Shown: positions 18,560 to 46,793, counted from the stretch's first letter. The stretch is DNA of 64,000 nt from Geosiphon pyriformis uo1 (GCA_016748015.1 JAAOMT010000258.1:746173-810172); one strand, 5' to 3'. Made by a program: numbers and translations. Notes: generated by a model from the sequence alone, not told the origin.

Positions 18560-19910
18560 AGATAAGTATATTTCACAAAATTAGGTGAAATATAGATTTA
18601 TTCTGCTTTATTCATTCAAAAAAAGAGGCACGAAAAATCTCTAAGTAGTTTAAAAGAAAGGCTTTTCTGTGTACAAATATACAAAGACCTAAATTACAGC
18701 TTATCACATATCGGAGAAAAGAATTACTCCGAAGATTTGCAGTAAGAGAATTCAATAAGGTAATAATATATAAATTGTATCTATATGAACCTAAAATTTG
18801 TTTTGTTCATGAAGTAAAAATCAGTAAACTCTATTAAGAAAGTGTCATTTAATTGTTATATCAGAGTATTCTAAATACTTGAGATAAAAAAAGGGCTTAT
18901 AATTATGTCTTAATGTTTTTCAATTTAAATTTTTTTCTTAAGAATTTTTACATATCAATTTTAGGCTTGTTTTTTTCCTTAAGCACTCTGATGTTCTGAT
19001 AAAATGCTTAGATTTAATGAAGGCAAGTAAATGGTATAAGGAATAAGTTAAACCATAGAACTTGCTTGATAAAATTACAAAGTAACATAGTTGTTTGGTT
19101 TAATAGAAGATATTGAGGCTTCAAAATTAGCTTATCTGGAGGGTAATTTTTTGAAAGGCTTGTTTTCTCATGAAATTGTGGTGGAGAGTATTTTTTAACT
19201 ACTTAATTAACGATATATCCTTAGCATTATCATCATCAGCATACTGGAGAGCTTGCAAAAGAATCTCTGGTTTTGAAACATTTCGACATGATTCATAAGA
19301 ATTTGGATTATCACCCGTTTTTTCTCTCAGTAGCATAATTTAGTAAAGAATCCCCTTTATAAGTTTTTTAAAAATCTACGTTAAATGATTTCAAACTGTG
19401 AATTATATGATGACCTTTGTCAAAATTGATTGCGGCAAATAAGGCACTTGGACACGATGCCCATAGTTTGCGCTATTTGGGGAATATGTTATTGGGATTG
19501 GCTTTATTTTTAGTATTGCCTCCAAAATATCAGATTTATTGTTTGGAATAGGGAGAGATTCTCAGATATTTGAATTTGCATCAAGAACCAAAAGTGCATT
19601 TTTTATTGCTAGGCTTATTTCGGAAAGCCCTGTTTCTATCACTAAATTCAAAGCAGTATTCTGATCATGATAATTAATATCGAGTTTATTTTGATGGAAG
19701 TAACTACAAATCTTTTGGAATTTTTCGTCTTGGATATTATTTTTGTTTCGAACAATAAAATGAAATAAGTTTTGGCCAGACTTAGTCCTATCCATTGTAA
19801 TCCTGCAATTATCAGATATATCATTAGGATTATCTCCCTTTTAAAGATGCCTAAAAGCTCCAGACATATCACGACTCTTTATATAAAGGAAAAGAATCCA
19901 TTTACTGCCG
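18560..19910 (-). pseudogene. Decayed copy of the ankyrin half and 3' flank of the kinase-ankyrin gene
   Basis: RTKSGQNLFHFIVRNKNNIQDEKFQKICSYFHQNKLDINYHDQNTALNL aligns with ORF 40919. Reverse-strand nucleotide homology continues into the 3' flank (about 40870-42430), with many indels and stops. Confidence 0.85.
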
Positions 19911-20880
19911 GGTAGTTGCATTTTTAGAGCCAGAGTTTTTGAAAGATCAAAATTGCAAGAGGGGCTTTGCTTCAGATATTTATGCTTTTAGTGTAATTCT
20001 TTGGGAAATTTCTACTTGCAGGCCACCATTTTCTTTTACCAGTAAACACTTTTATCATCTATCTGTTGACTTCATTAGCATATATTTAGCTCTATAAACG
20101 ATGTTGGAGAAATCCTTAAAAAAGGCTAAATTTGATGAGGTTATTTAATCAAAGGTTTATACAATGTTTTAAGTTTAGAAATCTTTTTTATTATTTGAAC
20201 ATACATATGTTAATATTATCTGAAAATATTTTTGCATCTATATCATAGGAGCCACACACAAAAAAATGTGATGAGTTTAGATCCGGCGGTAAATGCAATC
20301 TTTTCCTTCATATAAAGAATTGTAATATGTTTGGTACTTTTTGGCATCTTGAGAAGGAGGATGATTCTAATGATTTGTCTGATGAAGACTTGACCGGGAT
20401 TGAATATACTCTTTTATTTGAATTAAATGTCATAATTACAGATTATGTTATAAATTTAAGGAATAAAATAGTGATTTTTATAACCAGGACTAAGTCTGGC
20501 CAAAAAATTTTTCATCTTCTTGTTAAAAGGAAAATAATATCCAACTTGAGCGCTTATTCAAATATCAAGCCACTAGTAGTATAATGGCCTTTCAAAGACG
20601 AATCTGATATTTGGAGGCAATTTTAAAGAATTCCCCAAACAGCACATAATATCCAAGTCCCTTATTTGCCGCAATCAATTTTGACAATGCTCATTATATT
20701 AAAGTCATTCAATGCCGATTTTGGAAAAACTTATGAAGGGTTTTCTTTGCCACTAACAGGAAAACCCAGGGATGATGATGAAATATCTTGTAGATTCTAT
20801 CGAAATGTTCAAAAATCGGAGACTCTTTCCCACACTCTCCAGCATGCTGCTGAACATATATTCTTGCCTAAGGAATAGAA
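19911..20880 (+). pseudogene. Second decayed kinase-ankyrin copy (kinase C-lobe plus deleted ankyrin region)
   Basis: VAFLEPEF, DIYAFSVILWEIS, KKCDEFRSGGKCNLFLHIKNC...FWHLE and KSFNADFGKTY are collinear with about 40225-41730, with large deletions. Confidence 0.85.
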
Positions 20881-21355
20881 AACCATATTGGTATTAAACA
20901 AGAAGTACAAGTTTGCATAAATCAATGTCCTACTTGTGCTAAAGATATCAATAATGGGTTTTCTTGGTCCTTACATGTGTTTGTATATATTTTCTCAATT
21001 TCTTAAGCCACCGAAAGATATTTTTGCCGTGCTGTTGAATTTATGAAATAGTCATACTTAGCTTCGAAAAAATCAATAGGTTTTGTATTTTTCTATCCTA
21101 ACCAATAATTTCATGACAAATAAATTTAGGCAACGAGAAAAAACTATGATTTATAGCTGCAATTTATAAAGTATTGCTGTATAAAATTTGTTCTATTTTG
21201 ATCCTCTTCTTTAATACGATAGAAGATTTGTATTTGACAAAGAAAAACATTACTCTAAAAATGGAAAACCTTTAAATAAAAGCGGTTTAATGCTTAGATT
21301 TTTCTATGTAATGACTAAAAGAATGGCAAAACCTAATTGAAATTCACTCTGAATT

Positions 21356-22280
21356 TTATAAAAAGAATGGGACAATAGCTTTTCTATCGAGAGGATAATT
21401 TTCTTTAAATTTATTTAAATACCATTGATGTGTTTTTAGAGCACGAGGAAACAAATTTGCAGCTGTCGCAAGAACAAAAACAAGTGCCGGAGGACTCCAC
21501 CATGCTGCAATAGAAAATCCAATCCATTCAATAAATTCTCCAAAATAACTTGGACAGCTGACGTATCGAAAATAACCACCATACGGAATTGAATAGTGTT
21601 GGTTCTGAGTTTTTTCAAAAGGTGTTTTTATATTCGATTTCAGGGCAGCCTTTTTCCTCAATGAAAATAAAATATTGTCATGAGATATATTTATAACCAT
21701 TCCAGTTAGAAAAATTATGATCCCAATGGCAACTCTTAAATAAATCCAGAAACCATGAAAGTCATCTCTTGTGTATTTCCCCAGTTCAATAATCCAATAG
21801 GTGTTGGTAAAGGCATTAAAGAAATTAAAAGTCATTCCACAGAGTATAGTCAGCAAGTGTATCGGAGCAATTCGGGGAGCACGAACGACGTAAATGAAGA
21901 CACGATTGGTATAATGGATTAGCCAAAGTGATATGAGTAAAATCTGAATGATTTTTAAAGACAGAGATGATGAAAAGATTGTATAAAGCAATGTTAAGGG
22001 GGAAACTACTTCCATTATTATCCAAGATATTTTCCCGGGGAACATTAAGAATTTTGTGTATGACCATTCAAATTTCCCTGGAACAAAAAATTTTGTTAGC
22101 CTTTCAAGATTTGGAAATAAAATGCTTTCAAAACTAAGCGATTAAATTACCGTATGGGGCATCAAGACAAGTCAAGAGACTAATGAAGAGAAGGGGAAAA
22201 GTACAGTATATCAAAAAGGCGTTGGCATAAATGTCATGTTTTTTATCAAGCCCCAAAATGTTTGATGTGCTGTTTCCCAT
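21356..22280 (-). CDS. 3-oxo-5-alpha-steroid 4-dehydrogenase (SRD5A/DET2-like), 2 exons
   Basis: Exon 1 MGNSTS...CLDAPYG, intron 22150-22078 (GT-AG), then exon 2 with WIIME, HYTNR, NISHDNIL..LR, YSIPYGGYFRYVSCPSYFGEFIEWIGF, NLFPRALKTHQWY and RKAIVPF. Confidence 0.93.
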
Positions 22281-23069
22281 TACGAATGAAAAGTTCGATT
22301 TTTTCAAAACTACATGTAAATGGAAAGGTCATGAATGATCAATAATCCGATTAATCCATTAATAAACTGATCGTTGCACTAAGAAACATGTTATTAAGTT
22401 AGCTTCATTGAGTCTAAATATTTTGTTGAACTAAAAATCTTGAATGAAAAGGGATAACCATCTATTCTCCAATTTATTAGCGTCTGATCCTAATAGCAAA
22501 ATAGTAACAAAAATAATCAAAACTCATGCCGTTATCTATCACAAGGTATATAATAGTAAATAAATAAGTTGCCGTGCGAATTAATTTTGTTAAAATATAA
22601 TATATATATCCATGTTTGGCAATGAAGGAGTTCAAAACCGTTATATCTATAGAATTTTGAGGTCTCATCATAAAAAACATTAGAATTTTTCAAAAATTAA
22701 TTTACCAAGTTTCATTGTTAAGAAACGCAATAAGATTTTTGATTTAGAGCTCAGAATCAGATGGAGCCAATGCCGAATAAATTTCATTTTGAAAATAATG
22801 TTCATAATCACAACCTTTACAAAGGAAAAAGATAAATCACAATCATGAAGTTACCACTTCTAACCCTAATTACATATTAATAGTTTTTTTTAAAGCGAAA
22901 AAGTGGTTTGGAGAGATTTCCAAAATGGCAATGATGGACAAGCTTTGTATAAATAAAAGCTTTATTTGATTCATGCATCAAAAACAAAGCAATTTTCATA
23001 TTTAAATGTGGGTTTTTGCGATCAAGAATTATAGAATCAACAAAATTGAAAGATTTAACCCAACCTGAG

Positions 23070-24404
23070 ATGCATTCAAAAATAGCTTTTTTAGGTGATT
23101 TAATTTTAGACAGCAACATTCCTTTTATTTGTTTCAAAGAATTTTCAAGCCTTGAATATACAAGTCAAGGTATCACTGGACAATTATGGCAGGCACATTG
23201 GAAAACCAGAAATAATAAAATTACCCTTCAAAATTTTACGCATATCCTGGAAAAGCAGGAAATTAGTATTCGGGAATTCATTAATGAGGTTGTATTCAGT
23301 GACCAAGATGAAATTTTTTAACCAACGACAGATATTTATTTTGAATTTGAAAATGTCACGGATTTCTCAAAATTGAAAGGTTAAATCGCTGTCTAAAATT
23401 CCGAGCCATCCCAATATTATCCATTTCTTGGGAGTGACTCATGGTTTGTTATTCCGTCAAAGGGCTAAGCATTGATAAATTTATCTTATAATTCTTGAAT
23501 GGTCTTCCAAAATCCAGATTCCGAAATGCAGAGATTTTTTCTTGTCTTGGAATATATGACTGGCCAAAATTTATCCCAATTTCTTGAAGAAAATCCTGAC
23601 CTTGATTGGCAGCAAAAAATTGATATTGGGAAAGAAATTGCAAATAGCTTAAAACATATTCATTCAAATGGTCTTATTCATGGAGAATTGGTAGGATTCA
23701 TGAAGCTCAATCATTTGAAATATTAATATTTGTATGAAAAATAGATAATTTAAATTTTTTTCTCCTTTGACTTTTATAAATTATTCCCAAAGTATCCAAG
23801 TAGAATACTTTTCGCCACAAAGAACTCACTTAAAATAACTGGTCTATGCCTTAACTCGGCGATTGAAGAAGCCGTAATCAGCAAAGCTCTTTTCGATGGC
23901 AGTATGATCTACATAGACCCTGCATTCCTTGAAAACCCAAAATACAAAAAAGTCTCAAGTTCGGATATATACAGTTTAGGAATCTTGCTTTGGGAGATCT
24001 CTAGTGGCCGACGGGCATTCTCTGTAAGTCAAAATAGAGGAATAATTCAACTAACATATGCGATAATTAACGGTGAACGCGAGGCTCCGGTTGATGGGAC
24101 GCCATACGAATATGTGAGACTTTATCAAAGATGTTGGAATTCTGATCCTTTAATCCGCCCTCATATCGATGAAGTAATTGAGGCGTTGGCTACCATCAAA
24201 TTATTTCAACAAATGGAAATAAAAAGTTCCAAAATGAGTGATCCTGAGAAAAATTTATCAGAAAAATCTGATACCATGCTGAAAAGTAAAAAAAGAATAT
24301 TTTTCTTTCGGTCAAAGTCTATGGTCAAAAAATTATATAGATTTTGGCGACAAATCATCAAAAGGATTAGAAAGCAAATGACTGAACGGAGAAAGTACTT
24401 GTAA
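23070..24404 (+). CDS. TKL-derived pseudokinase, 355 aa, 4 exons, basic C-tail (left arm copy)
   Basis: Exons 23070-23288, 23380-23443, 23518-23690 and 23793-24404 splice in frame. Motifs: ITLQ (no Lys), IHGEL, LKITGLCL, YIDPAFL, SDIYSLGILLWEISSG and RCWNSDPLIRP. Confidence 0.88.
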
Positions 24405-24667
24405 AATCAAGTATAAATGACAACTTTCTGGGCTTTGTCACGAATTTCGTAAGAAAAACATCAGCGTGTAGAAAATGAGTATCTTTTGAAATTTCTTCAA
24501 ACCAAATAATTCAATAAGTTTACAGTCATAATACTGAAGAAATTTGCATAATTTGTAATTGAAATTAAAAATTTCGGGGTTCGAATATATCAATTTTGTT
24601 TGAATGTGAACTTTGTAATGCTAATAGCAAAAGAATATTAGAAAATTATTCAAATTCATGTTTTTCA

Positions 24668-24687
24668 NNNNNNNNNNNNNNNNNNNN
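24668..24687. other. Assembly gap (20 N)
   Basis: N run. The sequence after it repeats 22973-24667 at offset 1715. Confidence 0.98.
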
Positions 24688-24784
24688 ATGCATCAAAAAC
24701 AAAGCAATTTTCATATTTAAATGTGGGTTTTTGCGATCAAGAATTATAGAATCAACAAAATTGAAAGATTTAACCCAACCTGAG

Positions 24785-26119
24785 ATGCATTCAAAAATAG
24801 CTTTTTTAGGTGATTTAATTTTAGACAGCAACATTCCTTTTATTTGTTTCAAAGAATTTTCAAGCCTTGAATATACAAGTCAAGGTATCACTGGACAATT
24901 ATGGCAGGCACATTGGAAAACCAGAAATAATAAAATTACCCTTCAAAATTTTACGCATATCCTGGAAAAGCAGGAAATTAGTATTCGGGAATTCATTAAT
25001 GAGGTTGTATTCAGTGACCAAGATGAAATTTTTTAACCAACGACAGATATTTATTTTGAATTTGAAAATGTCACGGATTTCTCAAAATTGAAAGGTTAAA
25101 TCGCTGTCTAAAATTCCGAGCCATCCCAATATTATCCATTTCTTGGGAGTGACTCATGGTTTGTTATTCCGTCAAAGGGCTAAGCATTGATAAATTTATC
25201 TTATAATTCTTGAATGGTCTTCCAAAATCCAGATTCCGAAATGCAGAGATTTTTTCTTGTCTTGGAATATATGACTGGCCAAAATTTATCCCAATTTCTT
25301 GAAGAAAATCCTGACCTTGATTGGCAGCAAAAAATTGATATTGGGAAAGAAATTGCAAATAGCTTAAAACATATTCATTCAAATGGTCTTATTCATGGAG
25401 AATTGGTAGGATTCATGAAGCTCAATCATTTGAAATATTAATATTTGTATGAAAAATAGATAATTTAAATTTTTTTCTCCTTTGACTTTTATAAATTATT
25501 CCCAAAGTATCCAAGTAGAATACTTTTCGCCACAAAGAACTCACTTAAAATAACTGGTCTATGCCTTAACTCGGCGATTGAAGAAGCCGTAATCAGCAAA
25601 GCTCTTTTCGATGGCAGTATGATCTACATAGACCCTGCATTCCTTGAAAACCCAAAATACAAAAAAGTCTCAAGTTCGGATATATACAGTTTAGGAATCT
25701 TGCTTTGGGAGATCTCTAGTGGCCGACGGGCATTCTCTGTAAGTCAAAATAGAGGAATAATTCAACTAACATATGCGATAATTAACGGTGAACGCGAGGC
25801 TCCGGTTGATGGGACGCCATACGAATATGTGAGACTTTATCAAAGATGTTGGAATTCTGATCCTTTAATCCGCCCTCATATCGATGAAGTAATTGAGGCG
25901 TTGGCTACCATCAAATTATTTCAACAAATGGAAATAAAAAGTTCCAAAATGAGTGATCCTGAGAAAAATTTATCAGAAAAATCTGATACCATGCTGAAAA
26001 GTAAAAAAAGAATATTTTTCTTTCGGTCAAAGTCTATGGTCAAAAAATTATATAGATTTTGGCGACAAATCATCAAAAGGATTAGAAAGCAAATGACTGA
26101 ACGGAGAAAGTACTTGTAA
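24785..26119 (+). CDS. Identical pseudokinase copy, probably an artefactual duplicate next to the gap
   Basis: Same ORF translations as 23070-24404 at offset 1715. It lies in the contig bounded by the two N gaps. Confidence 0.45.
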
Positions 26120-26953
26120 AATCAAGTATAAATGACAACTTTCTGGGCTTTGTCACGAATTTCGTAAGAAAAACATCAGCGTGTAGAAAATGAGTATCTT
26201 TTGAAATTTCTTCAAACCAAATAATTCAATAAGTTTACAGTCATAATACTGAAGAAATTTGCATAATTTGTAATTGAAATTAAAAATTTCGGGGTTCGAA
26301 TATATCAATTTTGTTTGAATGTGAACTTTGTAATGCTAATAGCAAAAGAATATTAGAAAATTATTCAAATTCATGTTTTTCACGATGCAGCATGAGAATT
26401 TAAATGCTTTTCAAATACTTAAGATCTCGATTAACGCAAATTTAAAAATTGAGATTTTAACTTATATAAGATATGGAAAAAGTTTAATCATTAAAATGAT
26501 TTTAATTTACATGATTATTAATTTTAAAATATAACTTGCATCTCTTCAAAACTTGATATTATTATAGAAAACTTCATAAACTATTCACCTTAGCAAAGTG
26601 CATGTAAATTGCGAAATGTAAAGTTCAAGAAGTATCTTATCAGGGAGATTTTGAAAAAAAGGCATGATTTTAAATCCTTGTCCATCTAAAGTCAAGATTA
26701 TCTGTAAATTCGTCAAATCCAAAGATTCCCTTTCTAGAAACGCTATGGATAGAGAATAATAATTTCAAACTTGCCTTTTTTATATACCGTAAGTTTTTGA
26801 GCCTCAATATATTTGAATTTTCTTAACTACTTTTTGAGGGTAGATAATAAATTTTTTTAAATGCGTTGCTATTTTTCAACAATACACCTGTATAAGGATA
26901 TGAAACAAAATTAAAATTTTTTATCAAAACGAACCCTTACAAGTGTAAGAATT

Positions 26954-27013
26954 AGTCGGGCCTATCACCTTAGTGCTATTAGCACCACGCTCTACCGACT
27001 AAGCTACGAGAGC
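26954..27013 (-). pseudogene. Truncated tRNA-Ile(AAT)-like sequence (gap-duplicated copy)
   Basis: Reverse complement of 30166-30225. Identical to 28053-28112 at offset 1099. Confidence 0.55.
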
Positions 27014-27365
27014 TTTTTTATCTTACTTCATAATTTTATGAATAAAAAACTTTTCAAGCAAACTAGGAAATATTTATTCTCTAACATTGGCTTTTATCCT
27101 AACCATCACATGCTTTAAACCCTGATTAGCAAAGAATTCAATCAAAGAAAAATGTATAAACTGGGGCTTCCTACAATTAAACTTATTATGTTTAAAAAAT
27201 TCTCATCGTTATTTAAATTTGCTTTATAGTAATGATAAGAAAATCTAAACCCCTATTTATGTACCTTGATATCACTCAACCCAAATTGAAGCGTTTTGAA
27301 ATAATGCGTATAATAGACACTCTTTTAAAACCTTCTCAGGTCAGGATCAGCCCATAATTTATGAA

Positions 27366-27385
27366 NNNNNNNNNNNNNNNNNNNN
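27366..27385. other. Assembly gap (20 N)
   Basis: N run. 27386-28464 repeats 26287-27365. Confidence 0.98.
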
Positions 27386-28052
27386 TTTCGGGGTTCGAAT
27401 ATATCAATTTTGTTTGAATGTGAACTTTGTAATGCTAATAGCAAAAGAATATTAGAAAATTATTCAAATTCATGTTTTTCACGATGCAGCATGAGAATTT
27501 AAATGCTTTTCAAATACTTAAGATCTCGATTAACGCAAATTTAAAAATTGAGATTTTAACTTATATAAGATATGGAAAAAGTTTAATCATTAAAATGATT
27601 TTAATTTACATGATTATTAATTTTAAAATATAACTTGCATCTCTTCAAAACTTGATATTATTATAGAAAACTTCATAAACTATTCACCTTAGCAAAGTGC
27701 ATGTAAATTGCGAAATGTAAAGTTCAAGAAGTATCTTATCAGGGAGATTTTGAAAAAAAGGCATGATTTTAAATCCTTGTCCATCTAAAGTCAAGATTAT
27801 CTGTAAATTCGTCAAATCCAAAGATTCCCTTTCTAGAAACGCTATGGATAGAGAATAATAATTTCAAACTTGCCTTTTTTATATACCGTAAGTTTTTGAG
27901 CCTCAATATATTTGAATTTTCTTAACTACTTTTTGAGGGTAGATAATAAATTTTTTTAAATGCGTTGCTATTTTTCAACAATACACCTGTATAAGGATAT
28001 GAAACAAAATTAAAATTTTTTATCAAAACGAACCCTTACAAGTGTAAGAATT

Positions 28053-28112
28053 AGTCGGGCCTATCACCTTAGTGCTATTAGCACCACGCTCTACCGACTA
28101 AGCTACGAGAGC
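28053..28112 (-). pseudogene. Truncated tRNA-Ile(AAT)-like sequence
   Basis: Reverse complement of 30166-30225. Confidence 0.7.
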
Positions 28113-28423
28113 TTTTTTATCTTACTTCATAATTTTATGAATAAAAAACTTTTCAAGCAAACTAGGAAATATTTATTCTCTAACATTGGCTTTTATCCTA
28201 ACCATCACATGCTTTAAACCCTGATTAGCAAAGAATTCAATCAAAGAAAAATGTATAAACTGGGGCTTCCTACAATTAAACTTATTATGTTTAAAAAATT
28301 CTCATCGTTATTTAAATTTGCTTTATAGTAATGATAAGAAAATCTAAACCCCTATTTATGTACCTTGATATCACTCAACCCAAATTGAAGCGTTTTGAAA
28401 TAATGCGTATAATAGACACTCTT

Positions 28424-28705
28424 TTAAAACCTTCTCAGGTCAGGATCAGCCCATAATTTATGAAACATTGCAAATGTGGCGCCTCCAAGTCCGGCCGTAA
28501 CGACAACCCCAAGCGGTAACAATTCAGGTGGAAAATTTCGTATAGCATGACGAATACGATGCGAAAGAGGAAGAGGATCACGCGCCCAAATTCTTTCCCC
28601 ATATTTTTTTTTATAATCGGGTTGAGTGGCGCCTTGGGTGAGGGTCTGGTTTGGAGGGCTTTTTTGGCCATGAGGAGCTATATCTTCATTACTTCTTGGC
28701 ATCAT
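28424..28705 (-). CDS. NDUFA4/B12D (MLRQ)-like small membrane protein with N-terminal extension
   Basis: The C-terminal PPELLPLGVVVTAGLGGATFAMFHKLWADPDLR matches the P-E-L-x-P-L...TM...K-L-x-x-D-P-D pattern of fungal NDUFA4-like proteins. Confidence 0.75.
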   Translation of the reverse strand: MMPRSNEDIAPHGQKSPPNQTLTQGATQPDYKKKYGERIWARDPLPLSHRIRHAIRNFPPELLPLGVVVTAGLGGATFAMFHKLWADPDLRRF

Positions 28706-29572
28706 CTCTTATAGGCTTATGAAGAATCAATCCTTTAAGCAAAGCCAAAACGTGAACTTTTGAGAGATAATATTTAGCTCTTTTAACTTGAATTTTAAAA
28801 GCGAAAAACTTTGATCTATCAAAAAATCTAATCATATTTCAATCATAAGACCTAACGACGATGATACAATTTTGACGAAATAAGCTTGATGACGTAATAA
28901 ACTGAAACTATTTATGTTGAGATGTGACGAAAATGAACTTTGAATTGAATGAAGCCTCTTTGATAAATTTTTTCCTTAAAAAAAAGTAATTAATATGCTA
29001 TTTTATCGTGTGAGCCCTAAAAATTTGCCAAGTCCTCTTCATTGTCTATTTTAGGTATTTCTATCAAGATTTCTCTACTAGGTTAATTGAAATATTCAAT
29101 TGATATACCTCTATTTTTAACATTTGATATATATCAATAATTTGTTTTATAATTAATATTTGCTAATGTTAAATTGATTCTGTCTAAAATATACCTATTT
29201 TGTTTTATGATATAAGGGTAAACAAATCTAACCTGTAAATGTTCAAAAAAATTCTATATTAATTTTTTTATTTAAGGTATAACAAAGGTTTTAATAAAAT
29301 CTAAAATTTTGTCATAAACATCAATTAGTTTTCATCTCATTCCCAAAATCCCTTGACATAAATAATTTCAGTTTATTGCGTCAAAATTGTATCATTGCCG
29401 TTAGTTCTTATGATTGAAATGTGATTGGCTTTTTGATAGATGAAAAGTTTCTCGGTTTTTAAAATTCAAGTTAAAAGAGCTTCTTGCATTCGATTATTTA
29501 ATTATTCTATTTCTTAAAAGTTCAACATTTTGGCTTTGCTTAAAATATTAATTTTTTATAAGCCTGTAAAAG

Positions 29573-33982: not shown

Positions 33983-36718
33983 GTGTCCTCTAAAAAAAAT
34001 TGAATGGCTATATCAAGAAATAGAAAATGATGAAATTAATTGTATTCCTTTCATTACATTTCGAAATGTTCAATAAAAACGTTGGGCGGTAATGGAGAGA
34101 TTTGGAGTGCCGAATGTGACAAATATGGACATATCGCTTTAAAATGTTTTAAAAACAGTCTTCAAATCTCCTCGGATGAACAATTCATGCATTTCATTAC
34201 CGAAGTATGATTTGTTTTACTGAATATATGAGATCAATTAAAAAATTAAAAATTTTTCCTTCTTTTGAATATACAGTTGAAAAATTTGAAGAAAGTCGAA
34301 GATCACATAATGTGATTAAATTCCATGGTATTAGCTTCAGTATGTTTAGCAAATGTCTCTTTTTTAGTTATTTATTACCCTTTTTCGGTTTATATCAACC
34401 ATTGCTAACGAAATTTTGATAATCCATCAAAAATTTTATAGATGAAATAGATAACAAGTGCAATTCGCGAAAAATGGTACCCTTCGAGATTACTTGCAAA
34501 AGAATAAGGGAAAGCTTTCGTGGGCTAAAAATATTGAACTTGCATTACAAATTGCATCTAGTCTTTGTCACATATATGCCGCAGGTATTGCTCATCGAGA
34601 TTTAGTAAGTTTTTCTTGTATCAGTCAAAAGATTGGGTTATTTTCTATTTAATTTATCAATAAACTATTTATACCATTGCAGCATTCTAAAAACATCTTG
34701 GTACATGATGATGTTATAAAAATTGCAGATCTAGGTCTTTCAAGAATTGTTGACGAAAAACAATCATCTACATCCAGATTTGGTGGAATTATTGCCTATA
34801 CCGATCCATATCATCTTTATGACTCAAAATTCAAACGCGATAAAATCATCCGACATTTACAGCCTAGGTGTTATCCTCTGGGAAATATCAAGCTGCAGTC
34901 AAAAACCCTGGTATCGGACTTTATCATTTGGCTAGAAAAATTATTGAAGGTGAACGTGAAACACCTGTGGCAGGAACACCTTCAGATTACGTTCGACTGT
35001 ATAGAAACTGTTGGCGTTGTGATTCTATCCAACGACCACTTATTGAAGAAGTGATAAGAAAACTTGGCGAAATTAATTTGGAGGATGTTCACGATTCCCC
35101 AGGTCCACAACATGATATACAGTTCATTCTTCGAGATACTGGTATTTATTTATTTTTTAACTTATCAGAAGATCAAAATCGAGTAGGCTAAATCAGATTA
35201 AACCTCTTTTTTAGAGGGATCTGAAGATAGTCTCACCGATAGTTTTCCCAACAGTGGTCTCAATGATAATTGCTTGATTAAGAAATCTCCCAAGGGTTTT
35301 TGGAAATCACGTAGCACATTTAATATTAGTTCAATATGTAGGTGTCATAGAGATATTCTTTTCTAGCCGAAGATCAAAGACCTTTAATAAATTTAATCTT
35401 CTTTTATAGTTACTATTGCAAGAACTTCAAGGCCAAAGTACTTGGCTCTGCCTAGTCTAGCAGAAAAAGCTGAGGTAGTTATTTTTATTCATCTATTCAA
35501 TAGTTTAATAAAATTTTGGCTCAAATCATATTTAATTTCTTTGGAAAATATCTCCTTTATACAGGAATAACCTTGCAAAATTGTCTAGAAATCTGCAAAA
35601 TGCACGACAAACTTGATATTACAAATTGCCATGCAGGTTATCACATCATATGTGGAGATCCCAAAGGACTTCGATGGCATCTCCAACAAGAACAATTTGA
35701 CCTCAAAATTGAGTACGAGCTTACTATGGCCCATTAATCAATCAAACTATCCCTAATTCTATTAACAGCCCGATATGGCAACAAAAATAGCATTTTAGAA
35801 ATGTTCCGAAATCTTGCACAATTTAAAGTTGAAGCATTGGTCTCAGACAAAGGACAAACAGCATTGCACCACTTAATTGACAACGATAACCTTTTTCTTT
35901 CGACTGAAAATGAATCGACTCAACCTTGTACAACTTTTATTCATGCTGCACAATGGCTTGTCAACCAGCACCATATTGGCATTAATGTAGCTGATTGTCA
36001 GGATCTAACACCATTAAATCTTCTTTTGAAAAAGAGACTTTCTACAATAACAAGTGAGACAATAGATGGAATGTTAAAACTTGGCGCCAACCCAAGACTC
36101 GAGTCAACATTTTGTGCCCCATTACAAATCATTCTGGTTCAAATTTCCCAAAATCCACAATTGACAAATGACATGACTAGAATAGTTGAGATCATGTCAA
36201 AACTTATTGAATTCAAGGCAGATCCAAATTCACCTATAGCGCCATTTGATAAATTGCCCCAACTGCTAAATGCTTTATTCCCAGCAATGCATTTGAAAAA
36301 TAATCGAGACATAATTATGTTATTTCTGAAATCAGATGTTGACGTATGGGCCAAAACAAAAGACGGATTTAATGCGTTAGCAAATGCAGTAAAATTGAAC
36401 CGTATTGATCTAATCGAGCTTCTATTTGAGCAGAAACGCGAACTTTTTTCACCAGAAAGCATGAAATCTGCTTTGAAACTTACTTGCTGGCGGAACAGAG
36501 AGGCAAGAAAAATTCTGAATGCTTCGGCTTTTAAAGGCATCGAAATTTCCCAAAATCATCCACGGCTCGTCAAAAACGCGTTATGGCGAAGATTTATATG
36601 TTGGAAGGCGAGATCCAGTTTTCCAAAAGAGAATCCTCAAGAACAGGAAACTAGTCCGAGACGAAATTTACCAAGCGAGGTAAACGTTAATCAATTCTTT
36701 TTAAAGAACCCGGTTTGA
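33983..36718 (+). pseudogene. TKL kinase-ankyrin repeat gene, disabled
   Basis: GGNGEIW, IALK, IAHRDL|HSKNIL, KIADLGL and SDIYSLGVILWEISS, followed by ankyrin repeats (GQTALHHL, DLTPLNLL, LGANP, GFNALANAV). It has GTG at the start position, stops near 34073 and 35735, and frameshifts that scatter the kinase C-lobe over three frames. Confidence 0.85.
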
Positions 36719-37766
36719 CAGAAAATGACCTTGCCACCCTCTTATCTGATGATTAATGCTCTCAACGGTGACAGAAAAAGGATTATGATATTTAGTAGAT
36801 TTCTAATCCTCCTTCCTTATTTGTGTCAAATAAAATTTAGGAAGGCATTTCAAACCATATGATACTTTGAAATGGCCACTTTTTAAAAGCATATTTTATT
36901 TTGATATCCAATTCTTTCGCCTTTACTCTCGATCAATAACTCGCAACGCGCGACATTGAATTTATTAAATTGATTGATGTAATTATTGGTTGGCTGCAAT
37001 TTTCCTTTCAGAATTTTCTAGTTATACTATCGGAATTCTGTGTATCTCTAAACAAAGGAAGGAATGAATGAATTATTCTGGTGACCAAAGCAGCTTGAAT
37101 GACTCAAATAGCAAATAAAATATCACTCTTAACATTAATCATAAGTTTTGATGTAATGAATGTTACTTTTTTCGATTAACTCAAAAATAAAAGCAGTTTG
37201 AAAACTTTTGTGTTCTGTTCTTAAGATGATTCAGATAATTGATAAACAGCTATTCAAATATTGGATTGAGAATTCAAAATCAAAAAAAGTAGTAATTGGT
37301 AAAAGTGATGAACAAAGTAATTAATTTATAAAAGTGTTTTTTTTGTTATTAGTTTCAAAGTAGGTTTGATCAAAAAAGTGAATAGAATAGAATATATGCC
37401 TTTCAGATGAGTGTTAATTAAGAAAACTACTTTTTAAGAATCTTGCAATTGTTCACTGAATTGTTCTTTAACTGGATCAAAAACTAAACAAATAAAAAAA
37501 TGGGTTTGATTTAATTTAAAATATTTTTCAGTTTTTTGAATAAAATATATAATCACTTATAGAATAAACAACACAATATATTTGACAATTTTACAGAGAA
37601 CAATAATTAATCAACAAAAAATAATTTAAAAACCAAATTAAATGTGTAAGTTATTTAATTAAAGAAATTAATCTCAAAATCTTAATTTTAATTATTTGAT
37701 TAATCATTTTTCTTTAATCCGTGATTTGATGAAAATTAATATAATACGATAAACTAGTAAATCTTT

Positions 37767-38826
37767 CATAGAAGCAGATTCTAACACAAGTTTTCACTGG
37801 GATGTAAATGAAGAAAGAACAAAGAACACAAATTCACAACTTTAATTGACATCTATACCTTGGAAATCTTTTAAATAAAGTTTGAATACAAAATAGCATA
37901 CTTTTTCACAAAATTTATAGCTAGAAATTTCTACTATTATTATAGTATCTTTCAGGTTTTGAACAAAAGTTGAGTTTTAGCAGACGCTGTATAATTGCTC
38001 TTTCTGGAAACTAAGAAATTTTCCTAATATTCATTATCTTCTATAGCTTTTTTTATCTATAGCTTTAATTATATAAGACTTATTATAAATTTTGAATGAG
38101 AAACTTTATTTATTGAGATCCCGCTTTCTGCTAATATAAGAAGGTAAAGGAAGCTCGTTAAAAAAGTCTACTTTTTCCCAAAGTAAACGTATATTGGAAC
38201 CCTTGAATGTGACACATAAATGCCATGCTGATTATTTCCTATTTCAATAAAAAGGTGTCTGCTTAGATCTCATTATTCTCAACGTAAAAATGAAATAGTT
38301 GCTATTTACAGATAAAAAGTAATGCATGTCTAAGGAAGAATAGATTTTGTTATCCATATACAGCATTCCATGAATAAAGTCTATATGAAAGCTAATAGAT
38401 TATTTAGTTTTTCTATTAATTCTGCTTGGAAGATTAACTAACTTTGTACACTTTTATTTGTATCTAATAGATGTATACATTATCTAACTCTTTTACAGTT
38501 TTTTATTACTGTACAATTGAAATCTGGCAGAATGAAGCTGCTGGTGGAAAAGAATATTTTGTTTGGAGATTACACAAAATATCCACTTTCTCTTTCATAG
38601 TACATTTAATAATAGGAAACACTGTGGCTGAATATACGGAATTTAATTGAATATAAAAATTCAAGAGCTGAACGAACACAGGATATTGCAGCTCTGATAT
38701 TTTCATTGAGAATTCTTAAACATCCTCATATCAAGGGATCAAAATCTTTTGCAGTGTTTACAAAAATTGTCTCACGAAGCTACATTGTCACTCTCAAAAA
38801 ATTATCATTGACATATTACTAAATAA
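37767..38826. repeat. Left arm of an inverted repeat of about 1 kb
   Basis: Reverse complement of about 47113-48092. The inner ~560 bp are nearly identical (the 66-aa ORFs differ by one residue) and the outer part is diverged. Confidence 0.9.
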
Positions 38827-39404: not shown

Positions 39405-42083
39405 ATGTCCAGCGAAATAACACTTGTTCATGAGAGGCTGATAAAGATTTTAAAAGATTGCAAAATCCCTACACTCCCTTTTTCAGAATTTTCAAAACCT
39501 GTAGTTGCCGGAAATGGTGGAACTGGCATAATATATAAATCTAGATGGAAGGACCAAGATGTCGCATTAAAAAGCATAACAGATATATTTTCAGAAAATA
39601 ATCCTGACGCAAATAATCAATTTCAATACGAAGTAAATTTAATTCAAAGATTTATCCTCTTTTGCAACATATTTTGGTTTTTTCATTGAAAAACTTATTC
39701 AAAACTGAAATTTTCTCAAACACTTTTAAAAACAAGCTTAAACTTCTTTCCCGAATAACAGATCATAAAAATGTAATAAAGCAATTTGGATATACTCAAG
39801 GTATAATAATTTATTTTATGTGTAAAATATAGCCTTTATAATGATAATAAATACTTTTCATAATTTCCCATAGACGAAAAATCAGAAGAGAGCTATATTG
39901 TATTAGAATGGGCAGAAGGTGGCACTTTAAGAGATTATTTGAAACGAAATCCTCATATTGATTGCAATAGAAAAGTTGAAATCGCCCTTCAAATACTCAA
40001 TGGGCTAAAGGCTATCCACAATAATCAAATAGCTCACCGCGATTTGGTGAGTTTTTTTGCTTATTCTCTTTAAAATTGAATACTCTAGCTTAACTTTCTA
40101 ATATTAAATGCTTTTTCTCTTTAAAAGCATACAAAAAACATATTGATTATGAGTGATGGTGCTTTTAAAATTGCTGACCTTGGTCTATCAAAGCGTGAAA
40201 ATTCATTACAAGTCTCAATAACCGGGGGCATGGTTGCATTTTTAGAGCCAGAGTTTTACAAAGACCAAAGATACAAGAGGGATTTCGCCTCAGATATTTA
40301 TGCCTTTGGTGTACTTCTTTGGGAAATTTCTGCTTGCAAGGCACCATTTTCTTCTGATACTAGCCCTTATTATCTAGCTTATGAGTTACAACAGGGCAGG
40401 CGGGAAAGTCCAAAAATAGGAACTCCATTAGCATATGTTGAGCTCTATCAACGATGCTGGGATGGAAATCCTCAAAAAAGGCCTAAACTTGATGAGGTTA
40501 TTCAAACAATGGAGAATTTATCATTTTCTCCTGTATATGATGGGCTCCCAATAGATACTATTGGAAACTCGGGTAAGCTAATGACTTTGGATCAACAGGC
40601 TATTGATTTAAATATAAATTCAACCCAATAATTTTATTATTTCTAGAATATTTATTAACATACCCTGAAGACGATGAGATCAGCATTTGTGAAGACCCAG
40701 ATAACAATTTACCAGCAATAACAATTTCGCCTGCAGTAGACAAATCTACTTCTGAGGTTTTACAATGTTTTAAGTTTAGCAATCTCTTTTATGCTGTATA
40801 TTGACATTATCTGAAAAATACTTTTGTATCTATATCATAGGAGCGACATCCAAAAAAATGTGATGAGTTTAGATCCGGCGGTAAATGCAATCTTTTCTTT
40901 CATATAAAGAACTGTGATATGTCTGGAGCCTTTTGGCATCTTGAGAATGGGGATAATCCTAATGATATATCTGATGAAGGCTTGACCGGGATTCAATATA
41001 CTATTTTATTCGCATCAAATGCCACAATCACAGGATTATGTCGTAAATTGAAGGATTACAATGGTGATGTTATGGCTAAGACTAAGTCTGGGGAAAACTT
41101 ATTCCATCTTCTTGTTCATAACAAAAATAATATCCAACTCGAACAATACAAAAAGATTGGTAACTGGCTCCATAAAAATAAAGTCGAAATCAATCATCAA
41201 GATCAGAATGGTGATACTGCTTTGAATTTATTGATAGAAGCAGGGCTTTCCGAAACGACCCTAGCAATAATAAATGTTCTTTTGGTTCTTGGTGCCGATT
41301 CAAATATCCGAGACGCTAGTGGTATGACGGCTTTTCAAAGAGTCTTGCATAGCATCTATGAGAATCCCCTTCTATCCCAAAAGGTCGAATCTGAAATTTT
41401 GGAGGCAATGTTAAAGAATAAAGCAAATCCCAATATCATATTCCCCAAACAGCATAAACTATGGCCATCGTGTCCAAGTGCCTTATTTGCCGCAATCGAT
41501 TTTCCTGATGGTCGTCACATCATTAACAGTCTAAAATCATTCAATGCCGACTTTGGAAAAACTTACAAAGGTCATTCTTTGCTAGACTATGCCACTACCA
41601 AAAAAAAAAGGGGGATAATGCAAATTCTTTTAAATCATGTCGAAAATTTTCAAAAATTAGAGGCTCTTTCTCAGGCTCTTCAGTATGCTGCTGATGATGC
41701 TGAGCATATATTGTTAACTAAGGAGTTAGAAAAATACCCCCTACCACAAATGTTTGAGGAAACAATTTTTCCGAAAAATAGTTCTCCGGATGAGCTAAAT
41801 TTGAGGCCTCAAGATCTTCTATCAAGTCAAACAAGTATGTCACTTTGTTAATTTTATCAAGCAGTTTTACAACTTGACTCATTTCTTATGCCATTTAGCT
41901 ACCTTCATTGGCTCTGAACCTTCCCAAAATGGTGATTTATGTCGCAGTTCGAGTTCTATCAGAACATCAGAGGGTAAGGCTCAAGGAAAAAAAGACAAAC
42001 CTAAAACTGATAGGTGGAAGCGTATTAAAAAAAAATTCAATTTCAAAAAATCTAAAGATATCATTGTAACCACGTCTAAGTAG
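39405..42083 (+). CDS. TKL kinase with C-terminal ankyrin repeats, intact (7 exons, about 730 aa)
   Basis: Manual splicing is open throughout: GNGGTG, VALK, IAHRDL|HTKNIL, KIADLGL, FLEPE, SDIYAFGVLLWEIS, an acidic linker, ankyrin repeats (GENLFHLL, GDTALNLL, GMTAFQRV, GHSLLDYA) and the basic tail DRWKRIKKKFNFKKSK. Confidence 0.9.
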
Positions 42084-42489
42084 AACTTTTTAATTTATTT
42101 ATCCCAAGAATTTAGCACTCTAATATAAATATTAAATAATACAATATTTAAAGCTATGTAAACTTTCTTAATAGGTTTTACTTGATGTCATATATTATAC
42201 TTATTCATCTTTCATATTAATATTATTATTGGTCATTTTCTTAATACAGGAACAGAATAGACTTTAAATTCATATATATGCAATCTGTACTTTATCATCT
42301 TATTAAATTCTCTTACTACAAAGCCTCAGGATGTTTTCGCAATATCTGTACGCAGAAAATCCTTTCCCTTTGAACTAGAAGATTTTTTGTGCCGTTCATT
42401 GTTAATGAGTGAAGATATATAGACAAAAATTACTGCGCTGCATATAAAACCTTTTGTCCAATCCCAAATGAATCTGTCGGTCAAAGAAT

Positions 42490-43240
42490 ATAGCAAGCAA
42501 AAGCTGATCTCCTGGATGAGGATGAATGTTCTATTCTAAAGATCACTAGTTACCTATCTCAACTGTACGATACAATGTCAAAAAGTTGGAAAAACTTAGC
42601 ACAAAGGTGGTAATGGTCGTCATAAGAAAATTACAGGACATATATGGAGAAGAGTAGGTTAATATATTCATAAGAATTCTTTGTTTTTGCAAGGATTGCT
42701 ACTAAATTAAATACAGAGGAGTAGAAATTTCATATCGCACAATTGACAGACATTTAAAATCACTTGGATATATGAAAAATTTACCAATTACTACACTAAT
42801 GCTCACGTAATTTCCAAAGCAGAAACATGTCGAAGGGGCCGAATTTCATCTTAATGGTAACTGGAAAAAACCTTATTTTTGGATGAAACAGCATTTCAAC
42901 TGTTCCCAAATACAATTGAGAGTTGGTACAAAGGAAAACGAAAAGATTCCGCAAAAAATTATTGCGTGTGACAGTTTTGTATGAAGGGAAAAACCAGCTT
43001 ATTTTGTTTTGGGGTATCATGGATGTTAATTTTTATATTCGGATTTTGCGACAACATGTTGGAGATGTTAATGGGATAATTGGGAAGAAGTGGCACTTTC
43101 AGCAGGATAACAATCCCAAGCATACAAGCCGAGTAGCTAAGGCCTTTCTTGCGGGAAATTTATCCGAAGTCATTGACTGGCCCGTCCCATAGTTCGGATC
43201 TAAATGTTATTGAAAAATCCATGTGCAATCGTTAAATGTG
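42490..43240 (+). mobile_element. Tc1/mariner transposase relic
   Basis: FLDETAF-like segment, WHFQQDNNPKHTS, VIDWP and a degraded SSDLNVIE motif. Frameshifted, no TIRs identified. Confidence 0.85.
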
Positions 43241-43574
43241 AGCTAGTTTTGCTCTTTATCAATTGATTCAATTGCGGTGTGGAATTTTGAAAAAGCTTCT
43301 TCTATTTTGCTCATTCAATTATTTGACTAACGGTTGGCTTTACAAAAGAGCACTATATTTAAATAAGACCTCTAAATTATATAGATTTCAAAATGCTATT
43401 AAGAACATATTCAAAAGAGGAATAGCTTCTTAAACAGCGTTATTACATTAATATATTTTTAAAAATATTGCTAATTATTAATTTAAAATTTAAACAAATT
43501 GATTTGAATAAATTTTTTTATGCCTTTCGACACACAAAAAGACTTTTCATTAAAGGCACCCAATAATACACATA

Positions 43575-44007: not shown

Positions 44008-44039
44008 TATCTTTCATATAATTTTTTTTCACAAAAAAT

Positions 44040-44890
44040 TCCGAATTATTAGATTTCTAACAATTTATACCTAAAATCATATTTTTTCGGCCTGAATTTG
44101 GCTTTAATACTGCTTCAATCCTCTTAAGCATTGAGGCAATAACCTCTTTGAGAAAAGAGACACTGAGTTTCTCATTCCTCCTTTAGCGCGGCCTTAATTC
44201 GACCACAAACTTCGGAAAGACTTCAAGCTTTGTATATTGTCCTTCAATAGCTTCCAAATCTTCTCAATTGGGTTTAGGTCAGGCGAATTTGCCGGCAAGT
44301 TGATAGTGGTAAACTTATTTTCCGTTAACCATTTTTTCGATTTTCCCGCAGCATGGTGCGGCACGTTATCATGTTCTGAAATGGTAAAAAGTTGATTTAT
44401 AAGATTTCAAGGTGACTATTCGCATTTATTTATTTTTTATCATTTTTTATTCATTACAAAATATTAATGATCCCTTTAATTCCCCCGCAAAACATCCCCA
44501 AATTATATCAGTTTCTCTTTTACTTTTGAAAATAGGCGCCAAGCGATTAACATTAAAGTTCTCTCAAGTGTGTCGCCAAACTTTTCGTTGTCGTAATCGC
44601 TTCCAAATCTCCACACTGAATAATAAGCAATTTTATTTTCCTCGCACCACCCAACACGGTAAAAGCATGTGCTTCAGAGATATAGGCTTCTTTGTTTGTT
44701 GCGATACGTAAATGAAGTCCGGAGTTGTAGAGTACATTTCCCGGCAGTTAAAGAAGACCAAAACTTTTGAAAATATCGCGGAGTGATGCATGGTGGTCTT
44801 CCAGAACGTATTAAGTTTTAATGTATTCGCTTTTTGTCAGAAAAAAAATGTTTACACACTCAAATCGGGCTTTATTTTTGGGGGGTACTG
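44040..44890 (-). mobile_element. Tc1/mariner relic
   Basis: The minus strand gives HDNVPHHAA and LPANSPDLNPIEKIWKLLKDNIQ. The right end reads TA|CAGTACCCCCCAAAA on the minus strand. Confidence 0.82.
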
Positions 44891-45511
44891 TAGTTAAACA
44901 CAATTCTGGAATGACAAATCTCTTATGCTAATTTAGGAAATGATCTATAAGGAATTTGTGCTTTCGACCGCTAGATTAAAATACAGAACATATATATTAT
45001 AAATTTCAATTTGTCTTCGATCTATTAATACATCTGACAACCTGGAATTTTTGGTAGTACTTCAAAACTCCGAGAAGGGCTACAAATGCATCAGTTGGCT
45101 CCGCTTAGAACGAACGCAATTAATTTAGACTTTTCGGCATAATCCAGAGTGGTTTCCAGAAATGCTTATTATAGTTGAATAATTGTTAACTAACTAGAAT
45201 AAAAATTTCTCCTTAAACCATAGTTGTATAATCCAAAGATTGGCTTAACGAAGAATTTTTACTTTTTGGCGAATTTTCCAAATAATCGTACTTACCATCA
45301 TTTATTATATCAATCTCTGATTCAGAATAGGATTGTATTGATTTCTTGAACAAATCAGAGTTATTTAATCTAAAGAAAACAAACCTTTTTCCTTTTTATT
45401 TGAAACTCACTGGCATTATCAATGGGGATGTTGATTAAATTTCTTATAAAAAGCTCAAAGAATTTCTAAATCTTATTTTTAATCTCTAAATATTCTTCTA
45501 CATTAAAGAAA

Positions 45512-46793
45512 ATGTCGGAGAATAACAAAGCTATCAATGAACTGTTAAATTCAGATATTGTTTCATATATACCTTTCGAACAATTTGAAAATCTTGTGTA
45601 CATTAGTCGTGGAATCAGAGGACAAATATGGGAGTCTATATGGAAAATTCAGGATCAAAGCGTAATGCTTCAAGATTTTTCTACTATTTTTGAAAGAGAC
45701 GAGCAGAGCGTAAAAATTTTCTTGAATGAGGTCTTTGGATGCTTTCTTGATATTAGTTAATTAAACAAAATATATCATGTAAATTTTGACCCTATTATTT
45801 TTTCCTTACTTGCAGATCGAAAAACTAGCACCACTTCCTGAACATCCAAGCATCCAGAAGTTCTTTGGAGTAACTCAAGGTCTTTATGGCTTTTATTAAG
45901 GACTGATGATAAATAAAATCTTGAATTAATTCGGGTTATTTTATTTTTCAGATTTCAAACTCAATCGCTATTTCCCGGTCTTAGAATCAATTAAAGGTCA
46001 AAGCCTACTAGATTATTTAGAGAAAAACCCTGCGATAACCTGGATCGAAAGAATTAAATATTGCTAAAGGTTTAAATCATATCCACTCTATTGACATATT
46101 TCATGGGGAATTGGTAATATTTTTTATTGAATTTTAAAAATGTGCGTTTAAACCATAATTAATTTAACAAAGTTGAAAAATAAAAACATATAGGTTTCAG
46201 ATAGGGTTATTGTAAAAAGTGTACACAGTGTCAAAATAACAGGTATATGTTTATCGGCTGCCACAGAAGATGCAGTAATTGCGAAAACACTTTTTGGAGG
46301 AGCAATGGCCTATATTGAACCCGCCTTTCTTCAGGATTCAAATTACATCAGAACACTTAGTGCAGACATTTACAGTTTAGCAGTTTTATTATGGAAAATT
46401 TCAAGTGGTCACCACGTTTTTCAAGGCCTTTTAAAGAAAGAAATGATACAGATGACATGCCAAATTATTAAAGGCACAAGGGAAGAACCAGTTGAAGGAA
46501 CTCCTCCTGATTATTCAGGGTTATATAAACAATATTGGAATAGTATTCCTGACCAAAGACCAGAGATTAAGAAGGTAATCAAAAGTCTTGAAGGAATTGA
46601 AAAAAAAATATCTCGCCCCTCGAAATGAGAACAATCGGTATGAAAATGAAGAAAAGATGCATGAGAAATCGCATACAAGCAATTCTTCCTAACAGAAAAG
46701 AATATATTCAGACAATCAACTGATTCTGAAGCAAAAAAGTTGTTCCGAAAAGTATTGAAAAAAGGTGAAAAAGCTATGAATGAGAAATGGTAG
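45512..46793 (+). pseudogene. Second pseudokinase subtype, frameshifted
   Basis: SRGIRGQIW, VMLQ, IFHGEL, VKITGICLSAATEDAVIAKTLFGGAMAYIEPAFL. It has the same introns as the intact pseudokinase. Exon 3 is 162 nt instead of 173 (11-nt deletion), and the tail has further frameshifts. Confidence 0.82.

Follow-up and report, generated by a model that had tools for sequence, protein, structure and literature searches.

Does a cluster of kinase-ankyrin and pseudokinase genes in the fungus Geosiphon pyriformis, a member of the Archaeosporales (Glomeromycota), encode dedicated partners that are kept side by side, or is it a product of local gene turnover? The window that we analysed is a stretch of 64,000 nucleotides (contig C637:746173-810172) from an AT-rich, 128-Mb, 792-contig genome. 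An initial annotation of the window described four kinase-ankyrin copies and at least three pseudokinase loci, and took them for a dedicated kinase/pseudokinase switch or decoy module in which the pseudokinase is a catalytically stripped sibling of the neighbouring kinase. Weighing gene structures, local repeats, phylogenetic trees and the linkage of the same gene lineages elsewhere, we arrive at a different answer as the probable one: a birth-and-death cluster of one intron-bearing subfamily of tyrosine kinase-like (TKL) kinases, built by repeated local inverted duplications and subsequent decay.

The published Geosiphon assembly (PMC9453076) comprises 129 Mb, 64% of it repeats, in 795 scaffolds. 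Glomeromycotina genomes contain very large expansions of TKL kinases, with an average of ~1500 Pkinase_Tyr motifs per arbuscular mycorrhizal fungal genome, and the expanded kinases often form tandem arrays of duplicates in repeat-rich DNA (PMC4219462; PMC9453076; bioRxiv 10.1101/2021.03.30.436303). With one kinase C-lobe exon as query, we found at least 361 candidate C-lobe loci in the Geosiphon genome, and the closest homologues of the window kinases are all Glomeromycota "kinase-like domain-containing proteins". The copies in the window cluster range from 100% to 70% nucleotide identity, grading down to ~25% amino acid identity; four of the seven real kinase or pseudokinase loci are broken. 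This graded series of local paralogues, with intact genes and pseudogenes side by side, has the form of a birth-and-death cluster, which the initial annotation had cited as typical of immune loci. The window paralogues share 36-53% protein identity and are saturated at synonymous sites. Loss of catalytic residues is widespread in the alignments that we collected: at least one catalytic Asp is missing in 145 of 270 kinase domains and both are missing in 45, in a set biased by the pseudokinase query with which it was gathered.

The kinase-ankyrin loci of the cluster, an open reading frame (ORF) that bears on one of them, and the second of two pseudokinase subtypes (A and B) are as follows; both copies of pseudokinase A lie in a palindrome set out further below.

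39405 to 41851, plus strand: intact TKL kinase-ankyrin gene (NCBI G9A89_010101), from exon borders, kinase and ankyrin profiles and the public model P0087
About 33983 to 36718, plus strand: dead kinase-ankyrin paralogue of ancient divergence, its exon 1 interrupted by two in-frame stops and its exon 4 by two frameshifts
18368 to 19911, minus strand: decayed inverted copy of the 3' part of the intact gene (ankyrin exon and downstream DNA, equivalent to 40875-43480), from tblastn and self-blastn
19915 to 20882, plus strand: decayed direct partial copy of the kinase C-lobe and ankyrin exon (equivalent to 40233-41733), with deletions and stops
42923 to 43192, plus strand: 89-aa ORF with a "QDNNPKH" stretch, joined into the public model of the kinase-ankyrin gene
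45512 to 46628, plus strand: pseudokinase B (NCBI G9A89_010102), of the same build as A, with exon 3 deleted in part

The intact gene has six exons (39405-39632, 39737-39800, 39874-40046, 40128-40572, 40647-40756 and 40841-41834/41851) of 228, 64, 173, 445, 110 and ~1000 nt, and every border is GT/AG, in agreement with the NCBI model P0087. Its catalytic motifs are complete (GNGGTG, VALK, HRDL, HTKN with the catalytic-loop Asn, and DLG), and the protein is probably a catalytically active signalling kinase; its C-terminal region gives a weak, divergent match to ankyrin profiles. The public model G9A89_010101 (872 aa) continues via three small exons into a fragment at 42934-43189, within the 89-aa ORF. 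This ORF looks like a fragment of a Tc1/mariner-type DDE transposase, and a Pfam search of it returned no match; the true end of the gene is more likely the stop at 41851, or a short extra exon, than the transposase-fused end.

All four kinase-ankyrin copies of the initial annotation, the intact one and the three decayed ones, are present in the sequence. The inverted copy at 18368-19911 is ~75% identical in nucleotides to the intact gene and has accumulated five TGA, one TAG and five TAA stops, while the adjoining direct copy at 19915-20882 is sister to P0087 in our tree (support 97); together they represent an old duplication of the intact gene's 3' half, palindromic in arrangement and scrambled. 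In the dead copy at ~33983-36718 an ankyrin ORF of 305 aa (35801-36718) is still open. When the dead copies were checked for changes resembling repeat-induced point mutation, we found only a moderate GC-to-AT excess (58 vs 34, 25 vs 10, 19 vs 6), from which the 34-kb copy was free. The head-to-head arrangement of pseudokinase A (32394, minus) and this 34-kb copy (33983, plus), which had been read as a pair, is real, but its kinase-ankyrin member is a pseudogene, with stops and frameshifts.

Pseudokinase A lies within the clearest of the inverted duplications, a palindrome interrupted by two assembly gaps.

22973 to 24667, plus strand: outer 1695 nt of the left palindrome arm, with pseudokinase A, as assembled
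24668 to 27385, plus strand: assembly redundancy (gap, contig 24688-27365, gap), repeating 22973-24667 and repeated by 27386-28464
27386 to 28753, plus strand: inner left arm, with a B12D/NDUFA4-like gene at 28424-28705 (minus strand; PF06522)
28754 to 29524, no strand: central spacer of the palindrome, 771 nt, from self-comparison
29525 to 32491, minus strand: right palindrome arm, 2967 nt, with a B12D-like gene at 29573-29854 (plus strand) and pseudokinase A at 31060-32394 (minus strand)

The flanks of the gap at 24668-24687 (22973-24667 and 24688-26382) are identical over 1695 nt, and those of the gap at 27366-27385 (26287-27365 and 27386-28464) over 1079 nt, without a mismatch in either case: the three scaffolded contigs overlap at their successive ends, and no sequence is missing at the gaps. 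Both gaps lie outside coding regions, and an ORF read through the first of them is an artefact. In contigs from a DNA run (X1), the segment 24688-26286 joins directly to 27386-28508 in one contig of 2722 nt, at a depth of 181.6, roughly twice that of the flanks, and the junction 22972/22973 is likewise found. From the overlapping gap flanks and this contig it follows that the three copies of A in the assembly are really two; the "second" copy, at 24785-26119, is the same left-arm copy. Exons 3 and 4 of A are 100% identical to the NCBI protein G9A89_010099. Both subtypes that the initial annotation distinguished are present, but A exists twice rather than three times, the third instance being a redundant contig end.

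The two arms of the palindrome are 2967 nt long. Their outer 2678 nt, which contain the whole of pseudokinase A, are 100% identical; the innermost 289 nt differ at 25 sites (8.7%), and weaker homology continues outward of the arms to 32810 and 22707, with identity falling from 98% to 70% (2-30% divergence). An identical tract between diverged homologous flanks would most simply reflect recent gene conversion within an older inverted duplication. It is highly improbable that the palindrome is instead an artefact of assembly or amplification, with a single copy of A in the genome. Such an artefact would fit the two gaps with redundant contig ends inside the palindrome and the perfect identity of the arms over 2678 nt; but in X1 the depth-182 repeat contig is joined at 22973 by two distinct unique flanks (depth 73 and 89), the inner arm end is represented by two variant contigs (depth 57 and 62) that differ at six sites, and the arms, differing at 25 of the 289 innermost nucleotides, encode two different B12D-like proteins. 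The support from X1 is not fully independent, since that run may be the source of the assembly. The two B12D-like ORFs, each of 93 aa and resembling B12D/NDUFA4 (the complex I MLRQ subunit), are oriented towards one another where the arms meet the central spacer, and differ at 12 of 93 residues.

A second inverted repeat brackets the intact kinase-ankyrin gene and pseudokinase B.

37765 to 38826, plus strand: left arm, paired with 47112-48094
47112 to 48094, minus strand: right arm

Its arms share 82% identity overall and 98% over the inner 569 nt. A transposon origin was considered for this repeat and rejected, as the genome holds just these two copies, and for the same reason it is a local inverted duplication rather than a transposon end. 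The repeat-bounded association of the genes at 39405 and 45512, the other pair of the initial annotation, is real as well, but here it is the pseudokinase partner that is broken, as described below. The pattern of inverted duplication followed by decay recurs in a second cluster of the same subfamily, on contig C667 (1-12100). That cluster includes two near-identical inverted copies (770-1177 and 8201-8587, locus L009), one with an in-frame stop, and a third copy (2706-3104, locus L010) in which DLG is mutated to DHR.

Are the pseudokinases, then, decayed relatives of the kinase beside them? Pseudokinase A (NCBI G9A89_010099, a partial model only) is an open frame of four exons with canonical splice sites, at 23070-23288 (219 nt), 23380-23443 (64 nt), 23518-23690 (173 nt) and 23793-24404 (612 nt) in the left arm. 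In its active site the beta-3 Lys is replaced by Gln (ITLQ), HRDL by HGEL, the catalytic-loop Asn by Arg and DFG by ITG. Pseudokinase B has VMLQ, HGEL, R and ITG at the same places and is built of the exons 45512-45730, 45816-45879 (64 nt), 45952-46113 (162 nt) and 46194-46628; the exons of both individually match kinase profiles. Exon 3 of B has 162 rather than 173 nt, the 11-nt deletion leading to an in-frame TAA, and B is probably a pseudogene; the public model G9A89_010102 leaves this exon out and so bypasses the stop. Residues that are invariant in relatives are also altered in B (WEI to WKI, SLG to SLA, RCW to QYW). The common intron positions and the 64- and 173-nt internal exons to which the initial annotation drew attention hold between A and the active kinase; in B the third exon departs from that length.

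To place these proteins, the public model of A served as query in an exhaustive profile search, and the best 150 of 170,639 kinases matched at E<=0.001 were inspected. Among those 150, the signature of A was found in three others: B, a Geosiphon protein from contig C642 (G9A89_010613, P0031) and a protein of Ambispora gerdemannii (CAG8475356.1, P0054). Common to all four are GIxGxxW in the region of the Gly loop, x-E-L in place of HRD, Arg in place of Asn, and KITG in the DFG region. The C642 protein reads VQLL, HTEL, R and ITG, and the Ambispora protein VQLK (the beta-3 Lys being kept), FKEL, R and ITG; all four have lost catalytic residues, and the kinase fold is kept in the predicted structure of the C642 protein, as expected of a pseudokinase. 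Against the Pfam models PF00069/PF07714 (cut-off 23.1), P0031 and P0054 score 109 and 102 bits, compared with 150 for P0087 and 169 for P0121.

In a maximum-likelihood tree the four pseudokinases form a clade (support 100/98) that divides into A with B (97/78) and the C642 protein with that of Ambispora (100/96), and from this topology the HRD Asp, the catalytic-loop Asn and the DFG Asp were lost before Geosiphon and Ambispora diverged. The kinase-ankyrin lineage, too, has members elsewhere: a second Geosiphon gene, on contig C727 (G9A89_020869), groups with an orthologue from Ambispora leptoticha (99/97, 46% identity over the full length), and kinase-ankyrin genes of like build, their catalytic motifs intact, also occur in Acaulospora morrowiae, A. 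colombiana and Cetraspora pellucida. A single local origin, with all window members in one clade, is rejected by the approximately unbiased (AU) test (p=0.0136); a single clade of all kinase-ankyrin genes is not (AU p=0.117). Paralogues on C727, C726, C701, C714, C645, C592, C667 and C642, like the other-species orthologues, have an intron directly after HRDL or the equivalent motif, and the first three exons of public models have the same phases and similar lengths (234, 64 and 179 nt on C727; 219, 64 and 176 nt on C642; 240, 52 and 176 nt in the Ambispora pseudokinase, whose 52-nt exon corresponds to the 64-nt exon). Because they are common to at least eight paralogues at other loci, the shared intron positions mark the subfamily and not a tie between neighbours.

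The initial annotation was therefore right that the pseudokinases are not random decay, given a well-supported clade that also takes in a Geosiphon gene unlinked to the window and an Ambispora orthologue, shared substitutions and a common four-exon structure; its reading of them as stripped siblings of the neighbouring kinase is replaced by that of an old, separate lineage of the same subfamily. On these sequence comparisons the HxEL/Arg/KITG pseudokinases are an old and maintained dead-kinase lineage rather than the result of local decay. In the literature that we searched on Glomeromycotina kinase expansions, we found no description of this clade. P0031 and P0054 have a conserved C-terminal motif in common, "RGSVYSQFS..SHH", within a tail that is disordered apart from it; the last residues of each protein are a short run of basic and aromatic ones, a Cys lying close to the end, and the tail could bind a membrane or a partner. 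Outside the clade, an independent predicted pseudokinase of the same subfamily, with HGNL for HRDL and GFG for DFG, lies on contig C701 (373.2 kb; locus L004, 3688-4457).

A reading in which the kinase-ankyrin gene at 39405 is the only functional member of the cluster, A being a recent pseudokinase duplicate that has yet to gain disabling mutations, is unlikely. B, the 34-kb copy and the copies at 18-21 kb are indeed all broken, the region is repeat-rich and rearranged, and the NCBI model of A is only partial. Yet A is still open, with its four exons, canonical splice sites and, in the C-lobe, every residue that is conserved across the clade; its branch length (0.63) is like those of the conserved orthologues (0.39-0.60), while that of B is longer (0.86); and, if the root lies outside the clade, A and B split from the C642 lineage before the divergence of Geosiphon and Ambispora. 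Pseudokinase A is probably a functional, non-catalytic member of the old lineage.

If the two lineages formed a dedicated module, they might be expected to occur together elsewhere, as the initial annotation implied. Neither the 17 kb surrounding the C642 pseudokinase nor the +-10 kb surrounding that of Ambispora gerdemannii contains kinase-ankyrin sequence, annotated or not, and no pseudokinase of the clade was found around the C727 kinase-ankyrin gene (17 kb) or on the kinase-ankyrin contigs of Ambispora leptoticha, Acaulospora morrowiae, A. colombiana and Cetraspora pellucida (8-27 kb). The general co-localisation fails, with the partner missing at both of the other pseudokinase loci and at all five of the other kinase-ankyrin loci; at the A. 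morrowiae locus, another active TKL gene lies 7.7 kb away. The ankyrin domain type of these genes occurs in the Geosiphon genome only in the window and on C727, and the window is the only site in that genome where the two lineages meet.

Several points weigh against this conclusion and the broader explanation. Linkage was examined within ~10 kb, on other-species contigs that are short (8-33 kb), and the search that defined the clade drew on a representative protein library from which relatives more than 50% identical to a listed protein are left out. The unresolved backbone of the tree may accommodate a deep sister relation of the two lineages. Just ~7 kb separates intact A (32394) from the intact kinase-ankyrin gene (39405). 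A run of uncertain kind (X2) has patchy, read-length contigs on A (exons 1 and 4) and on the B12D-like gene, none crossing a splice site, and those on A are compatible with its transcription. Finally, both window lineages are divergent, apparently Geosiphon-specific, and together only here, so that a lineage-specific pairing, though doubtful, has to be weighed.

Such a pairing would make intact A and the kinase-ankyrin gene at 39405 a Geosiphon-specific pair for signalling or non-self recognition, its linkage kept by selection, and we regard it as improbable. It would agree with the intactness and proximity of the two genes, with the retention by A, and not by B, of all the conserved C-lobe residues of the clade, with the identity of the two A copies over 2678 nt between diverged flanks, and with the divergence of the two genes from conserved paralogues that are unlinked, a pattern expected of fast-evolving modules. 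Against it stand the absence of linkage at seven of seven other loci, one dead partner in each of the two adjacent pairs, and a negative search for guard or executioner components: the RHIM core [IV]Q[IVLC]G occurs in none of six proteins examined, the predicted structure of P0031 has no four-helix-bundle executioner domain, and NB-ARC (PF00931) and NACHT (PF05729) have no match in the genome at E<=0.001 in a six-frame, exon-by-exon profile search, which may miss split domains. With linkage lacking elsewhere, introns that are subfamily-wide and a common local origin rejected, the proposal of a dedicated switch or decoy module is not sustained. A wider version, in which HxEL/Arg/KITG is an undescribed dead-TKL family of the Archaeosporales, perhaps of all Glomeromycota, from which A, a duplicate specific to Geosiphon and evolving in concert, was recruited beside the equally lineage-specific kinase-ankyrin gene as a fast-evolving regulatory or non-self-sensing pair, has in our view only a slim chance of being correct.

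Returning to the birth-and-death cluster, we propose that repeated local palindromic duplications of TKL genes, each followed by decay, would account for the locus, in which two old lineages of one subfamily would happen to sit together. The kinase-ankyrin lineage has its conserved member elsewhere (C727, with Ambispora orthologues) and is represented in the window by one intact, one ancient dead and one scrambled, dead partial copy; the pseudokinase lineage likewise has its conserved member on another contig (C642), the window containing two identical copies of A, their identity across the 2678-nt tract presumably kept by gene conversion, and the broken B. The kinase-ankyrin protein would be an active Ser/Thr-type TKL kinase whose partners dock on its ankyrin repeats, and the pseudokinases may serve as non-catalytic scaffolds or allosteric partners of TKL kinases generally, in the manner of KSR and RAF, rather than of their neighbours specifically. 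Their proximity would be incidental, arising from local duplication where both kinase genes and repeats abound.

Two further genes of the window are unrelated to these lineages or belong to another subfamily.

15251 to 15835, plus strand: TKL kinase gene or fragment, ~3 kb outside the cluster, from tblastn and Pfam (PF07714, E=1.7e-16)
21356 to 22045, minus strand: intact, unrelated gene resembling 3-oxo-5-alpha-steroid 4-dehydrogenase, inside the kinase cluster (Pfam PF02544, E=8e-37)

The first has no GT donor after HRDL and an in-frame stop just upstream; lacking the intron after HRDL, it belongs to a different subfamily. The public assembly and annotation of Geosiphon are in error in this region, where the copy number of A is inflated by two spurious gaps, the kinase-ankyrin model runs on into the putative transposase fragment and two models of pseudokinases are cut short.

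How does the locus compare with known systems? By sequence and fold matches, the closest characterised relatives place the proteins in the TKL group. For the kinase domain of the kinase-ankyrin protein the best solved relatives are TAK1 (6.6e-29), BRAF, ZAK and CTR1, with RIPK1 at 1.5e-24, and for the pseudokinase CTR1, the pseudokinase domain of MLKL, DLK and RIPK1 are closest by sequence. The AlphaFold2 model of P0031 (mean pLDDT 79, above 90 over most of residues 1-300) has a standard kinase fold from residue ~20, preceded by one helix (residues 3-14) and followed by a disordered tail after 300, and it matches RIPK2, MLKL, RIPK1, RIPK4, BRAF and ZAK in the PDB at indistinguishable scores.

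Animal RIPK4/ANKK1, to which the initial annotation had likened the kinase-ankyrin gene, has the same order of N-terminal TKL kinase, linker and C-terminal ankyrin repeats. Domain order is all that is shared: the sequences show no particular affinity, RIPK4 falls outside the best 60 matches, and TAK1, BRAF, ZAK and CTR1 score at least as well as RIPK1, so that membership of that family is not upheld and the architecture most likely arose independently. The RIPK3-MLKL module resembles the locus in combining an active TKL kinase with a TKL-derived pseudokinase, and MLKL is among the best matches of the fungal pseudokinase, but the latter, in the model of P0031, has no four-helix bundle, the six proteins examined have no RHIM, no conserved linkage was found and the MLKL fold match is no better than those to RIPK1, RIPK2, RIPK4, BRAF or ZAK; with neither killer domain nor RHIM, a module of this type is not indicated. 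The plant ZED1/RKS1 (ZRK) clusters are alike in being clusters of pseudokinase paralogues that derive from an active kinase family and evolve by birth and death. ZRK proteins are guarded by the nucleotide-binding leucine-rich repeat protein ZAR1, whereas the Geosiphon genome gave no NACHT or NB-ARC match in the six-frame search and each conserved clade member is a lone gene without linkage to the others, so that no NLR-type partner for a guarded-decoy system was found here. KSR-RAF allosteric dimers provide a candidate functional analogue only: with its well-conserved C-lobe and its own conserved pseudo-active-site motifs, the pseudokinase could regulate active TKL kinases through dimerisation, and KSR1 and BRAF are among the sequence and fold matches, but the fungal pseudokinase is neither orthologous to KSR nor equipped with its CA1-CA4 regions.

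The expanded TKL families of Glomeromycotina are from the same group of organisms, belong to the same Pfam families (PF07714/PF00069) and likewise form local duplicates with pseudogenes in repeat-rich DNA; they differ in that most described members carry Sel1 repeats or no extra domain, whereas ankyrin is the partner domain in the window, where a conserved dead-kinase clade also stands out. The window is a further example of the known mycorrhizal kinase expansions, and its general importance is low. It nevertheless illustrates how palindromic duplication and local homogenisation drive kinase turnover in the Geosiphon genome, and a pseudokinase clade with its own pseudo-active-site signature provides an entry point to the role of the many dead kinases in these fungi.

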